From the NCBI RefSeq assembly GCF_006345805.1, contig NC_043009.1:10788001-10852000 (forward strand): a stretch of 64,000 nt of DNA, in the 5' to 3' direction. A program made the position numbers and the translations under genes. The DNA comes from Octopus sinensis (taxonomy: Eukaryota). The notes under the pieces are model-generated. The model made no database searches. It was not told the origin of the DNA and saw only the letters and a list, made by a program, of their open reading frames with translations. Shown one piece after another: positions 1,477 to 58,870 of the stretch (its first letter is position 1; each line of letters opens with the position of its first letter).

Positions 1477-1616
1477 ATTGCAGCTTGAAATAAAAGAATA
1501 CTGTAATGACGATTACTACGGTTCAACATGCGATGTCCATTGTATAGAACGGGATGATGACGATGGCGGCCATTATACATGTGATAAACATTCAGGAAAG
1601 AAAATCTGTAATCCAG
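1477..1616 (+). CDS. DSL-EGF gene, exon A (most of the DSL domain); 5' exons lie upstream of the window
   Basis: ttag acceptor at 1475-76 (an in-frame cag at 1481-83 is an alternative), CAG|gtaag donor at 1617. Encodes LQLEIKEYCNDDYYGSTCDVHCIERDDDDGGHYTCDKHSGKKICNPG, matching DSL C...YYG..C...C..RDD..GHYTC...G.K.C..G. Confidence 0.9.
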
Positions 1617-2054
1617 GTAAGCGAGAGAGAAAAAGAAGGGTAAGAGTGAGAGAGAGAAAGAAAGAAAGAAAGAAAGAGAGAAAGAGAGAAGATGTGAGCT
1701 AGTAGTAGAATTCAATAACTATTCAAATTTCATTATCTATTCGGTATTCAATTTAGTTATCATTCAGTAACAAAGAATCCTTATTGAACATTTTTATACA
1801 TGTTATTTAATTTATATATCATAATCTATGTGTTTCGGATAAAAATTGACGACTCCCGTTGAGTGATAGAGATATTCCTTCGTGATATCATTCAATAATA
1901 AACCCAGTTTCGGTTTACGGGAGAAAGTTACATTTTAACCAGGTCGTTAATGATCAATTTGAAGACAAATTTATCACACTATCCATAAATCTTGATATCT
2001 AACAGTTATATGATAAAACGATATGTGCATGGTGAACCTGGGTAATGAATATGA

Positions 2055-2202
2055 TCCGCCGAGGTCGACTTTGCCTTTCATCCTTTCGGGGTCGATAAAT
2101 TAAGTACCAGTTACGCACTGGGGTCGAGGTAATCGACTTAATCCGTTTGTCTGTCCTTGTTTGTCCTCTTTATGTTTAGCCCCTTGTGGGTAGTAAAGAA
2201 AC
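2055..2202 (+). mobile_element. SINE family B, 3' part (Nin/Sauria-like central domain)
   Basis: GAGGTCGACTTTGCCTTTCATCCTTTCGGGGTCGAT core, also present at 12.8, 14.0, 35.1 and 56.5 kb. Confidence 0.75.
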
Positions 2203-3222
2203 AGAATATGATGACATGCATATTTTTTCTTAATACTTTTCGGTAGATTAGAACGTGAATAACCTAATCGGTTTTCAGAAATCAGAAGACAATACAAAGC
2301 GTTTGTTTACTAAATCCTATGAACAAAGCCAAAGACTCTTGTTAAATTCATCAACCCGCTTTCGATTTGGTCTAGGAGTCACACAACAAGGTCGAAACAC
2401 TAGTGTATCCTTAACCTAACGAAGAGAGTGAGTCATGAATACATAGTCGTCAAAAAAAGAGTTAAAAAGTTGTTAGATAATGACGAAATACAACAGCGAT
2501 GAGCATACCCGGGTTCGAATCTATCTAACGTATAAGGAATGAAATTCTGCCATCGGAGCATCTATCCGATATATCTTAAAGTTATAAGATACGCCCTATA
2601 TCATGAATATAGAAATTCGACTTCAAAATCCGTGTTGTTTAAATACACTACCCTTAAAACATATGCTATTCATTTTATATAGCAATTTTATGCTAGTGTC
2701 TACGTTACCATCATCAAATGAATTGTATATCCTACTTTAGCCGCTATGATAGAATTATATCATTTTGTGTAATGTTTTGACAGCTGTACTACAATAGCTG
2801 TCATACAATTTAGATTTATCTTTCTAGACAATCGTAATGACAGGATATATAGCGATATTTTCGTATGAGGAATTGGTTATTTAGTATGACTAGAAATATG
2901 TGAACTTCATATAATTCATAGTAAGTGTGAACTTGGCAATGTAAACAAAATGACTCCGTTTAAGATAAAATAACGCTCATTTCTCGACGATGAACAACCG
3001 CACGTTTTATTAGTACATATGGCAAAACGGTAAACCTACACTGCGATATGGAAATGGTAGCTAATGGCCTCGAGAAAGGGTTGGAGCTTACAGTATCGTT
3101 TAACGTTGGCTGAAATATAGAATTTACTATGGATTATTGTATGCATATGTATCTCGTCCCATACTTTCAGGATTATCGACTGAATAGCATAACTCATGTT
3201 AAAAGTTAGCATACATAGCATA

Positions 3223-3630
3223 GGCGTAGGAGTGGCTGTGTGGTAAGAAGCTTTTTTACCAACCACATGGTTCCGGGTTCAGTCCCACTACGTGGCACCT
3301 TGGGAAAGTGTCTTCTACTATAGCCTCGGGCCGACCAAAGCCTTGTGAGTGGATTTGATAGGTGGAAACTGAAAGAAGCTCGTCGTATATATGTTTATAT
3401 ATGTATATGTATGTGTGTGTATATGTTTGTCTGCGTTTGTCCCCCCAACATCGCTTGACAACCGACGCTGGTGTGTTTACGTCCCCGTAACTTAGCGGTT
3501 CGGCAAAATAGACCGATAGAATAAGTACTAGGCTTACAAAGAATAAGTCCTGGGGTCGATTTGCTCGACTAAAGGCGGTGCTCCAGCATGGCCACAGTCA
3601 CATGACTGAAACAAGTAAAAGTAAAAAAAA
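3223..3630 (+). mobile_element. tRNA-derived SINE family A, full length
   Basis: Head GGCGTAGGAGTGGCTGTGTGG...GGTTCAGTCCC (A/B-box-like), internal microsatellite, tail CCAGCATGGCC...GAAACAAGTAAAAG; more than 10 copies in the window. Confidence 0.85.
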
Positions 3631-55664: not shown

Positions 55665-55842
55665 GCTACATGCAGTGTAGGAAATGACTCTTCTTTGTTT
55701 ATCTGCGAATGTATAGAAGGCTACACTGGTAGATTTTGTGAAACTTCAAGAGACAACTGCCAACAAAACAACTGCCTTAACGGTGCAACCTGCATTGACC
55801 TACAAAGCGGTTATGACTGTCGATGTGCTCCTGGTTTTACTG
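55665..55842 (+). CDS. DSL-EGF gene, exon D (rest of EGF3 plus EGF4)
   Basis: ctaaccag acceptor, CTG|gtaagt donor, phase 0-1; ATCSVGNDSSLFICECIEGYTGRFCETSRDNCQQNNCLNGATCIDLQSGYDCRCAPGFT(G). Confidence 0.93.
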
Positions 55843-56524
55843 GTAAGTAAAATTCTTCCATGAATGGCTTAATTAATTAATTAATTTATTATTAATATTA
55901 TTACCAGAAGTCAGACTATTGTTATCAGAATGTAATAAAAATATATATAGAAGTTAGCTTTACATAAAACGCATTCATATATTCTCATGTAATCCATAAT
56001 TGTACATTCTTAAACTGAATCATATAATCTGAAACGCATCTCTTCAAAAGATTCTATGGTAATGATATATATATATATATATATATATATTATATATATA
56101 TATATATATATATATATATATATTGTTTTACCTTCTAGTAAACTATATAGTTAATATCGGATCTTATACATATGGAACCTAATAAACTCGAAGTTTAGTA
56201 TACTTTCAAAAGACGAGCAAAGATTTACATAACCCAGATATTTTAAATTTGTATGCTTAGTACAGTCTTGAAGATAGTCAAAACAATAAAAAACATATCA
56301 AAAGCAAAACAATGAGAAATACAAGCTCTGATGCATAGAGTTTAAATATGGATGTCATATCAGTTGAGGATCAATTGTTAAATACATGATTTCTTTGAAA
56401 TTGTATTCTCTTCAAAGCTTATGTTTTAGAATAAGTTATGGTGAGTACAGACGTTATAGCAACTAATATAATAAAGTAAAATGCAATAGATTCAAAATCT
56501 GTGTCATAGTTTCAAATTTTGACC

Positions 56525-56720
56525 TCAGACCAGAAACCTCGGAGGAGGGGTCAGTCGATTACATCGACCCCAGTACTCAACAGGTACGTATCTTATCGAC
56601 CCCGAAAGTATGAAAGACAAAGTCGACTTTGGCGGAATTTAGAATCAGGATATAAAGACGGATGAAATACTGCTAAGCAATTTGTCCGGCGTTCTAACGG
56701 TTCTGCCAGCTCGCCGACTT
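56525..56720 (-). mobile_element. SINE family B
   Basis: Reverse complement of the family B core and head. Confidence 0.75.
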
Positions 56721-56825
56721 CTGATAGAGTAAAATGTTGAAGATAATGTATATATAATAACCTTTTTTGATTGTATAAACTTAAATAAAATATATTCTCA
56801 GCTATGTAGTATTGATTAATTCTAG

Positions 56826-58870
56826 GTTCGAGATGTGAAGTCGATGTTAATGAATGTAGCAGCGACCCGTGTTTACATGGTGGCATTTGTTACGACAGAG
56901 TGAATAGCTTTAGATGTGATTGCCCGAAGGAAACCAGTGGAGAAATGTGTGAAGATAATTATCTCTCATCATCAATTAGCGTTACTACCGAACGTGACAG
57001 TAGTCATCAATATACAGTCAAATCTAATTCCTCTGACGTAATATCTACAGAAAAGCAATCTGTAGATATATTTATCCCAACAAGTACAAATACCAGCATT
57101 TTAAAAATATACACTACAGAAAGCACCCAGTTAAACGTAACTCAAGAATTAAATCAAAGTGGGACAATTGAATATGGATTAACCACCAATTCTTCTGATT
57201 TTCTTCTTGATAAAAGTAACGCCACCTTAACTACAGTATCGTCGGAATCTCATACGGTTAAATATAACTCGAAGGATATCACTTCAGCAACAGAAGGCTT
57301 GCTTTTGGCAACTATCAATGCTTCAAATCCACAAACTGTTGAACCGTTTTATGTGCCTGTCACTGTAGTCACAGAGAAACCCATAGTGGTTACTGATTGT
57401 TTGGTTATCAAAACATTCCGATCCAATAAACTAAACCAGATACTCTCACAAAATAAAAAATACACTGTTTGTTGGTGGGTCTATGATTCCATCTTGCCAC
57501 CCATGTCTAACCCTGGTACAAGATATACTGAAAACCAGAACGAAGCGTATATTTGGTTTGAAGACACTATGAACGATTTATTGCCTTTAACTTCAAAATC
57601 GACTGCAGTAAATATAAACAGAGACGAAATATTGTCATATTTAAAAAATAGTTTACAAATAATTGATAACAGCTCTGAAAATAAATTTTCACACAATTTA
57701 GTTGATACACCATGTATTCAAATTTGGATGAAAGCAAAACGGAGAGGATACGGGTATTTGAACACAAAACGGGGAGATCCAAATGTTGAATATAAAAGCA
57801 AGTTGAATGTTAAACGAAGATTTCTATCATCTAAGATGCTTTACTGCAAACAAAACTATAACTTGGCTGTTACAACAGATACAAAAGGCTTGCGGAATGA
57901 AACGAAACAAGCATCAATATTGTCACAGTCAACGTCTATGGAGAAGGAAACTACGAACATATCGACATTACCACAGTCAACATTATTGACGAACAAAACC
58001 AGATACATAACAACATTACCTCAATCAACGTTATTGACCAATCGCTCCACACGCTTGCCAGCATTATTAGAACCAACTTCATTGAAAACGAAAACCATGC
58101 GTATATTAACAATATCGCAACCGGCGTTACAGATAAACGAAACAATTATTATGCCAACAATATCAGAAATAATTTCGCTGAATAACAAGAGCTCACAAGT
58201 ATCGAAACTGCTACAAACAACGTCAGGGATTAACAAAACAATACACATGACAAGACATGCTGTTTCCACCTCACCGAAAGAAACGACCACTGTCGGAGTA
58301 AGACGGTTTCACTTACTTCTGAGGAAACTTAACAGAACTCATTACCAGGAGCGCTTTTCATCAATCATAAACAGAGATGGCAACAAACCAAAAATGGTGT
58401 TGACCGTTCTTCGGACAGCCAAGAGAATCTACCAGGTTGGATCTGACTCAGCTCGTAAAGTTTACAGAAAAACAAAACTTCTTCTGCATATGACATTAAA
58501 GCAACTCTCTACAATTTGGATTTCCGTAAAAACTTTTGCAGTTCAACCGATCTCTAAAACTCAGGAAACTATTAGACAGACATGGTTAAAGGTTAATAAA
58601 GCATTCACTAAAACTCGCCAATTATTACAAGATGCTTATATGTTGGCACGGAATAACTTCAAAAATATTTATCAACGAATGAAGGAAAACACTTCAAATC
58701 TGTCAAGAGACAGCTATCAGAAATATTACAATTATTACAACAGCTATAGCAGAAAAATTAACAAAGTATCGAGATATTTTTCGAATATGTATAAAAATTA
58801 TACAAATAATTTGCAGAAATATTGGGAGAAATTTAATAAATATGGCAACGTTAATAACAAACGCCGTTGA
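56826..58870 (+). CDS. DSL-EGF gene, 2045-nt terminal exon (EGF5, Ser/Thr-rich stalk, Cys segment, 16-aa repeats, basic tail)
   Basis: ttctag acceptor in phase 1; [42 protein letters not shown] continues open for 681 codons to TGA at 58868-70. Confidence 0.85.
57911..58294 (+). repeat. coding tandem repeat, 8 x 48 nt (16 aa)
   Basis: Units such as [16 protein letters not shown] / [16 protein letters not shown] lie in exact 48-nt register. Confidence 0.85.

Follow-up and report, generated by a model that had tools for sequence, protein, structure and literature searches.

Notch ligands are textbook membrane proteins, and the pull that comes from ligand endocytosis is thought to open the receptor. 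An atypical EGF1-2 pair, the DOS pattern, is characteristic of Delta, Serrate, DLL1 and Jagged without being universal. DSL proteins that naturally lack a transmembrane (TM) segment are rare and informative. Here we describe LOC115218507, a gene of Octopus sinensis whose last five coding exons lie in a 64,000-nucleotide stretch of genomic DNA (the window), and whose product is predicted to be a secreted DSL-EGF protein with a long tail of its own. Several described systems provide a frame for it. In hJagged1, residues F199, R201, R203, D205 and F207 form a conserved Notch-binding face of the DSL domain, the mutation of which impairs trans-activation and cis-inhibition (PMC3415683). DLL3, which has a degenerate DSL domain, shows neither binding nor activation of Notch in trans, and clustering is required for soluble Dll1-Fc to bind and activate the receptor (PMC2171428). 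C. elegans DSL ligands without a DOS pair still activate Notch, and one of them, DSL-1, is secreted (PMC3415683, PMC2504490). A mollusc-specific Delta2 that has lost its TM segment by early termination was described in a 2021 survey of Notch genes in Lophotrochozoa (PMC8166818).

The window matches GCA_006345805.1 (CM016871.1, about 10,788,001–10,852,000) without a mismatch over its 64,000 bases. Inspection of each junction at the base level revealed five plus-strand exons (1477–1616, 39140–39262, 47173–47342, 55665–55842 and 56826–58870), which join with intron phases 1, 1, 0 and 1; each exon boundary shows an AG acceptor after a pyrimidine-rich tract and a GT donor. The joined frame encodes 884 amino acids (aa) that comprise a DSL domain, five EGF domains and a 638-aa tail, so that the junctions and the Pfam matches bear out every coordinate of the gene model in the original prediction, which was made from the window alone. 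The model corresponds exactly to the last 884 residues of RefSeq XP_029644226.1 (“uncharacterized protein LOC115218507 [Octopus sinensis]”, 1054 aa; UniProt A0A6P7T2R3, “Delta-like protein”, by cluster look-up). Exon 1 (1477–1616; LQLEIKEYCNDDYYG...KKICNPG) encodes the DSL domain, enters in phase 2 and exits in phase 1, and its tblastn match to residues 171–217 of XP_029644226.1 is 100%. The opening phase places the start of the gene upstream of the window. The whole gene is 97.9 kb long, and its signal-peptide and MNNL/C2 exons are located 10–19 kb and more upstream of the window.

Exon 2 (39140–39262; 123 nt) carries the end of the DSL domain (WSGESC) and the first EGF, which is of the calcium-binding type (NIDDC...). 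Its length and its phase 1 at both ends indicate a cassette exon; it is skipped in the O. bimaculoides isoform X2, which thereby loses the first EGF after the DSL domain, and a homologue of it exists in Argonauta. Exon 3 (47173–47342, phase 1 to 0) contains EGF 2 together with the beginning of EGF 3, and exon 4 (55665–55842, phase 0 to 1) contains the remainder of EGF 3 and EGF 4. EGF 5 (56826–56953), supported by splice sites and Pfam, opens the terminal exon, where it shares one exon and one frame with the tail. The open frame of this exon spans 684 codons, for which the chance probability at the base composition of the window is about 1e-17; the longest open stretch in 20 shuffles of the sequence was 162 codons. 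Such a frame cannot be a product of chance. The stop codon TGA (58868–58870, plus strand) has the same position in octopus orthologues, and the first AATAAA downstream of it (59075–59080, plus strand) is a candidate polyadenylation signal from a pattern scan only. Additional exons were sought in the 37.5-kb intron 1 with a six-frame scan for Cys-rich segments and with tblastn using four relatives, and none was found; the Argonauta and RefSeq models both splice the DSL exon straight to exon 2. The O. vulgaris annotation divides the orthologue into two models, CAI9731590.1 (“locus delta-like isoform X2”, the MNNL part) and CAI9731592.1 (“neurogenic locus notch homolog 2”, the EGFs and the tail). 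These names are misleading, as the two models are halves of a single gene.

No membrane anchor is apparent in the protein. The best 19-aa Kyte–Doolittle window of the 884-aa model reaches 1.5 and includes charged residues, and the longest run free of D, E, K and R is 15 aa, in agreement with the earlier description of a tail of about 640 aa that stays open to the stop without an uncharged stretch of 18–20 aa. The C-terminus is basic (...NVNNKRR) and shows no glycosylphosphatidylinositol (GPI)-type hydrophobic end. By hydropathy, neither a TM nor a GPI-type segment is present across about 25 family proteins, which include octopods and another cephalopod lineage. The homologous C-terminus is reached in all three O. 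bimaculoides RefSeq isoforms (1056, 1015 and 978 aa) as well as in O. vulgaris, another octopus and Argonauta, the gene of which has the same five-exon layout with a terminal exon of 1.85 kb. The claim that the protein has no TM or GPI signal thus holds beyond the window. The only hydrophobic segment in full-length relatives is an N-terminal signal peptide (Kyte–Doolittle 1.9–2.2 at residues 1–23), which makes a secreted or surface/matrix-tethered protein, as originally proposed, the natural reading.

Transcript data are consistent with this layout. A distant orthologue (P0006, 1126 aa, 46% identity in the head) is encoded by an uninterrupted open reading frame (ORF) on a 4.9-kb contig (L002) from run SRR9970008. 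The ORF is preceded by 359 nt and followed by a 1.1-kb 3´ untranslated region (UTR); it begins with the signal peptide and ends at the homologous stop, with no TM segment in between. Because the octopus coding sequence is spread over tens of kilobases, this single-ORF contig must derive from spliced mRNA. The P0006-type C-terminus is found in 16 cluster members (225–1144 aa). Transcript isoforms of this distant orthologue (719–1144 aa) differ widely in their number of EGFs. Three other contigs (L003–L005) were rejected as transcripts; their 5´ ends resemble intron 4 of the window, which renders them uninformative on splicing. The original prediction had named splicing out of the terminal exon to a downstream TM exon as the observation that would overturn it. 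No strong internal donor was found in the terminal exon (56826–58870), and comparison of ORF pieces with Argonauta revealed no conserved coding block within 10 kb past the stop; the frame of contig L002 likewise ends at the homologous stop. Candidate TM exons in 58871–64000 were discarded, as the hydrophobic hits there are microsatellite translations (IYIY...). Judged from sequence, the product of LOC115218507 is a real, presumptively secreted DSL-EGF glycoprotein without a membrane anchor.

The head of the protein is related to that of Delta. The DSL domain is recognized by Pfam (PF01414, E 1.1e-11, 45 of 46 profile positions) and contains the six-Cys pattern C-x3-YYG-x2-C-x3-C-...-GHY-x-C-...-C-x2-GW-x-G-x2-C, and the five EGF stretches that Pfam detects past it contain O-glucose and O-fucose consensus sites. 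When the O. bimaculoides N-terminus joined to the DSL domain of the window was used as a query, it aligned with DLL1 over the C2 (MNNL) and DSL domains (PDB 4xbm, E 8e-34), and matched DLL4, Jagged, fly Delta and Serrate less well. In this alignment, the RefSeq-type N-terminus, which in LOC115218507 lies outside the window, pairs with the DLL1 C2 domain; the Pfam MNNL profile hits the Argonauta and Batillaria relatives and falls below threshold for the O. sinensis protein. The DSL domain is directly followed by an orthodox calcium-binding-type EGF, and neither the model nor any family member contains the published DOS pattern, which is present in the octopus Delta1 control.

The Notch-binding face of the DSL domain has also changed. 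At the positions of hJagged1 F199, R201, R203, D205 and F207, LOC115218507 has H, I, R, D and G together with a one-residue insertion, so that substitutions affect three of the five positions (F199 to H, R201 to I and F207 to G). The face is equally or more degenerate in Argonauta (Y, E, S, D, G), in the other cephalopod lineage (I, I, R, D, E), in the paralogue described below (Y, I, T, S, K) and in the gastropod relative (Y, E, S, D, T). In contrast, octopus Delta1 and Jagged still have R, R, D, F, and F, R, R, D remain in Delta2. Over the first 225 residues, the head shares 67% identity with Argonauta, 46% with the other cephalopod lineage and 43% with the gastropod Batillaria, compared with 28% and 25.5% with Delta1 and Delta2 of the same species, respectively. 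The Batillaria relative is an MNNL-DSL-EGF protein with the same DOS-less layout. It was revealed by a profile search restricted by a length filter to short proteins, while a word-indexed MNNL-DSL search returned octopods only. By pairwise BLAST alone, the head is identified as a putative third molluscan MNNL-DSL lineage that is older than cephalopods. A 360-aa protein from ENA (P0028) has many tandem DSL-like units followed by an MNNL-like stretch, and resembles the tandem-DSL genes of bivalves in PMC8166818.

The tail can be divided into four parts on the basis of alignments of the octopod tails and of ten family members. Linker 1 (56954–57385, plus strand, as are all four parts; 144 aa) is composed of 33% Ser and Thr, has seven N-x-S/T sequons and an acidic pI of 4.5, and is poorly conserved. 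Domain A (57386–57847; 154 aa, pI 9.4) is conserved and contains four Cys residues and a conserved K-x-K-R motif. Linker 2 (57848–58291; 148 aa, 32% Ser and Thr, seven N-x-S/T sequons) has short repeats, is predicted to be disordered and is mostly missing in non-octopod orthologues. Domain B (58292–58867; 192 aa, pI 10.7) is strongly basic, with 42 Lys and Arg against 8 Asp and Glu, and has 16 Tyr residues and no Cys. It is the most widely conserved part of the tail, as the profile hits centre there and the alignment contains invariant columns. Nei–Gojobori ratios of nonsynonymous to synonymous substitution (dN/dS) are 0.34 for domain A and 0.36 for domain B when compared with another octopus, and 0.19 and 0.23 when compared with Argonauta, whereas the linkers range from 0.47 to 0.72 (linker 1: 0.66–0.72) in the same comparisons. 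These values indicate that A and B are constrained domains and that the linkers are spacers, and the conservation of the tail argues that it is functional. Near position 58490 in domain B (between ...ETIRQT and WLKVN...), the residues W-T/S-D-S are missing in O. sinensis and O. vulgaris and kept in O. bimaculoides, another octopus, Argonauta and all the remaining family members; the deletion costs the two species a nearly invariant Trp.

Neither domain resembles a known fold. Pfam detects no domain in the tail, only noise (GrpE, E 0.19), and a sequence-profile search of the PDB with the tail yielded nothing below E 0.16. AlphaFold2 predicts domain A alone as a beta-beta-beta-alpha-alpha-beta-beta sandwich with moderate confidence (pLDDT 66, pTM 0.65), and the whole A-to-B construct poorly (pLDDT 49). 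Foldseek found no significant match in the PDB for the A or the A-to-B model, with a best E value of 0.04 for A. A likeness of domain A to the major histocompatibility complex class I platform, the top Foldseek hit, was rejected as evidence (TM score 0.17). The tail is also distinct from known mucins: Pfam detects no VWD, CK or SEA domain in it; the order of strands and helices differs from that of the SEA domain of membrane mucins; the VWD/C8/TIL assemblies and cystine knot of gel-forming mucins are found neither in the tail nor in the paralogue; and the linkers, at 32–33% Ser and Thr and 3–5% Pro, differ from the Pro/Thr/Ser-rich repeats of such mucins.

The distribution of the tail was determined by two types of search. 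A word-indexed search identified it in O. vulgaris (98%), O. bimaculoides (LOC106880385, 84%), another octopus (68%) and Argonauta hians (47%). When 1.84 billion representative proteins were searched exhaustively with a HMMER profile, only nine matched, eight of them from cephalopods (E 0 to 1e-13). Four of the matches are octopod or other cephalopod orthologues. A further three are paralogues that group together, namely two proteins annotated as “mucin-5AC-like” (O. bimaculoides XP_014785705.1 and Argonauta GAB1601705.1) and a fragment from Sepia pharaonis. The ninth match, Littorina saxatilis XP_070199909.1 (“mucin-2-like”), is weak (residues 1188–1321, E 4e-4) and covers domain B only; apart from it, the A/B tail was traced only in cephalopods. 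This match suggests that domain B may be older than cephalopods. The Littorina protein is a gastropod protein with EGF-like repeats set in S/T-rich sequence. LOC115218507 carries the four-Cys domain A and the basic domain B at its C-terminus, past S/T-rich linkers, as expected of a member of this family. On present sequence comparisons, the tail is a lineage-restricted module that is already in the databases and whose predicted fold matches no solved structure.

In the paralogue, a DSL domain and a single EGF precede about 1100 aa of S/T-rich, mucin-like repeats, which are followed by an A-like domain and domain B. It has no TM segment, and its Pfam matches are confined to DSL and EGF. In Argonauta hians, the gene and its paralogue are 145 kb apart in divergent orientation (BAAFZT010000020.1, 32.40–32.63 Mb), an arrangement that points to local duplication. 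In both Octopus species, the RefSeq accessions of the two genes are numerically close as well.

Compared with Delta/DLL1 (4xbm), LOC115218507 shares the features expected of a DSL Notch ligand at its N-terminal side, namely the signal peptide, the MNNL/C2-like N-terminus, the six-Cys DSL domain and tandem Notch-type EGFs. It differs in the absence of a TM segment, a cytoplasmic tail and the DOS pair, in the change of three of the five DSL contacts, and in the addition of a 638-aa tail of unrelated sequence, and its head is only distantly related to the Delta1 of its own species. Delta2 (O. sinensis XP_029644317.1, O. bimaculoides XP_014771450.1) is a TM-less molluscan Delta paralogue in the same genomes; it retains an EGF1-2 of DOS-like type as well as R, R, D in the DSL face, and ends right past the EGFs. 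An assignment of LOC115218507 to Delta2 was rejected, since the head identity is below that to Delta1 and 638 aa continue past the EGFs. Proteins of the C. elegans DSL-1 type share the DSL domain, EGF(s), signal peptide and the lack of both TM segment and DOS pair; they are short, have no MNNL domain or glycosylated tail, and show no demonstrable orthology, and DSL-1 is an experimentally shown ligand. Vertebrate DLL3 has a degenerate DSL domain and no DOS pair in common with LOC115218507, but it is a TM protein that acts cell-autonomously, and the likeness is functional only, not one of ancestry. The “mucin-5AC-like” proteins (with XP_029644311.1 in O. sinensis) are true paralogues that have an A-like domain and domain B in common with LOC115218507. 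Their models contain no MNNL domain (the N-termini look incomplete), one EGF instead of five, and none of the domains of gel-forming mucins.

The gene (XP_029644226.1, XP_014785782.1) and its paralogue appear as unnamed entries in the supplementary DSL-domain list of PMC8166818, and a literature search by locus, protein, UniProt and run accessions identified no paper that discusses LOC115218507. A TM-less molluscan DSL protein is hence already published, while the architecture of LOC115218507, its cephalopod-wide tail family and its third-lineage head are undescribed. The original prediction of an unrecognised architecture with a novel tail stands as regards the architecture; the tail itself is conserved as a module in cephalopods, and RefSeq already carries an annotation of the gene.

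These data are best accommodated by a secreted, glycosylated DSL protein that is retained in matrix, mucus or at the cell surface and is most likely not a canonical activating Notch ligand, a reading to which we assign a probability of about 0.5. The protein would be secreted and, as we infer from its linkers, heavily glycosylated; the basic domain B, possibly together with domain A, would hold or multimerise it in the matrix, in mucus or at the cell surface; and the Delta-like head would be displayed on flexible glycosylated stalks, where it may bind Notch weakly or non-canonically or recognize another partner. The absence of a DOS pair and of an endocytosable cytoplasmic tail, together with the loss of most of the DSL surface in contact with Notch EGF11, makes a canonical activating ligand unlikely, with DLL3 and soluble Dll1-Fc as precedents. 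Several points weigh against this reading. R203 and D205 are retained in the Octopus DSL domain, and the worm ligands demonstrate that Notch can be activated without a DOS pair. The 43% identity between the octopus and gastropod heads over about 200 aa indicates a conserved partner, which could still be Notch. The signal peptide was assessed by hydropathy only, on the RefSeq N-terminus outside the window. The term “mucin-like” is loose for linkers with about 33% Ser and Thr and only 3–5% Pro. The tethering or multimerisation step is pure inference from the charge of domain B and its predicted helices, and AlphaFold2 models domain B as three long helices with low confidence (pLDDT about 50) and the linkers as disordered.

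A soluble or matrix-bound Notch antagonist or modulator, the role suggested in the original prediction, whose head binds Notch and competes with or tunes membrane Delta/Jagged, would fit the alignment of the head with DLL1, DLL4 and Jagged over MNNL/C2, DSL and EGF, its conservation from cephalopods to a gastropod, and the O-glucose and O-fucose sites typical of Notch-pathway EGFs. It is rather unlikely in view of the replaced and inserted residues in the DSL face, which is still more degenerate in relatives, the absence of the EGF1-2/DOS pair needed for good Jagged1 binding, and the identity of only 25–28% to the species' own Delta1 and Delta2. The same objections to Notch binding apply to a matrix-immobilised ligand in which tethering by the basic tail replaces the endocytic pull and activates Notch without a TM segment. 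That clustered soluble ligands bind and activate (PMC2171428), that the secreted DSL-1 is a C. elegans ligand, and that domain B is strongly cationic and conserved all speak for such a ligand, whereas matrix binding by A or B is a supposition and the paralogue with the same tail has an even more degenerate DSL domain; we consider it very unlikely. A broader form of this idea, in which the A/B tail is a cephalopod invention that anchors a TM-less DSL protein as a mechanically competent immobilised Notch ligand or as a Notch trap, is a long shot. If it were true, Notch signalling would be shifted from cell–cell to cell–matrix contact, and the mucin-like paralogue would be a second tethered DSL protein.

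Cleavage of a precursor is compatible with retention of a secreted DSL protein and does not exclude it. The K-x-K-R motif in domain A may serve as a convertase site, at which the head and linker 1 would be parted from the basic C-terminal half: it reads KAKRR in octopods, KTKRK or KIKRK in the other cephalopod lineage and KPKR in one Sepia paralogue, and convertase processing has been proposed for C. elegans OSM-11 and DOS-3 (PMC2504490). We regard cleavage as improbable, because the motif ends a predicted beta strand inside a folded domain and has no Arg at P4, and because octopod paralogues have IKPATVG instead. A wrong or incomplete gene model, with a TM isoform or with the tail of a separate gene fused by prediction, is scarcely credible. 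The two O. vulgaris models (CAI9731590.1 and CAI9731592.1) would favour it, but the tail is encoded in the same exon and frame as EGF 5, independent models agree in four species, contig L002 unites the signal peptide and the tail in a single ORF with a 1.1-kb 3´ UTR, and neither a strong internal donor nor a conserved downstream exon was found.

The remainder of the window is AT-rich, microsatellite-laden animal DNA. Very dense tetra- and dinucleotide microsatellites occupy 5400–6850, 9700–12350, 19200–20400 and many other intronic sites, and the ORFs that they generate on both strands (YIHT..., LSIY..., CVCV...; up to 336 codons) were dismissed as repeat artefacts rather than genes. Intron 1 harbours an annotated nested antisense gene (17419–18371, minus strand) with a predicted 111-aa product, the first ORF of which (MSDVLHRPGFRKRLRK..., 79 aa) has no Pfam match. 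A 98-codon open segment with Cys residues in the same intron (21791–22084, plus strand) has no Pfam match and is aligned by no relative; it is probably a transposon relic outside the gene. Intron 3 contains a non-LTR (long terminal repeat) retrotransposon on the minus strand (49095–52078), with two long, intact and overlapping ORFs that encode an endonuclease (417 aa; Exo_endo_phos_2, E 1.8e-14) and a reverse transcriptase (606 aa; RVT_1, E 1.1e-24). This may be a young element. A GC-rich block (about 48100–48750) adjoins its 3´ side.

For molluscs, LOC115218507 points to a third MNNL-DSL lineage besides Delta1, Jagged and the truncated Delta2. In cephalopods, this lineage appears to have been fused to a conserved, putatively glycosylated two-domain tail and duplicated into a mucin-like paralogue. 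Should the head still bind Notch, models of tethered or soluble ligands could be tested on a natural example. Otherwise, the DSL/MNNL module would have been reused for another purpose, and A and B would be new extracellular domains worth a structure.

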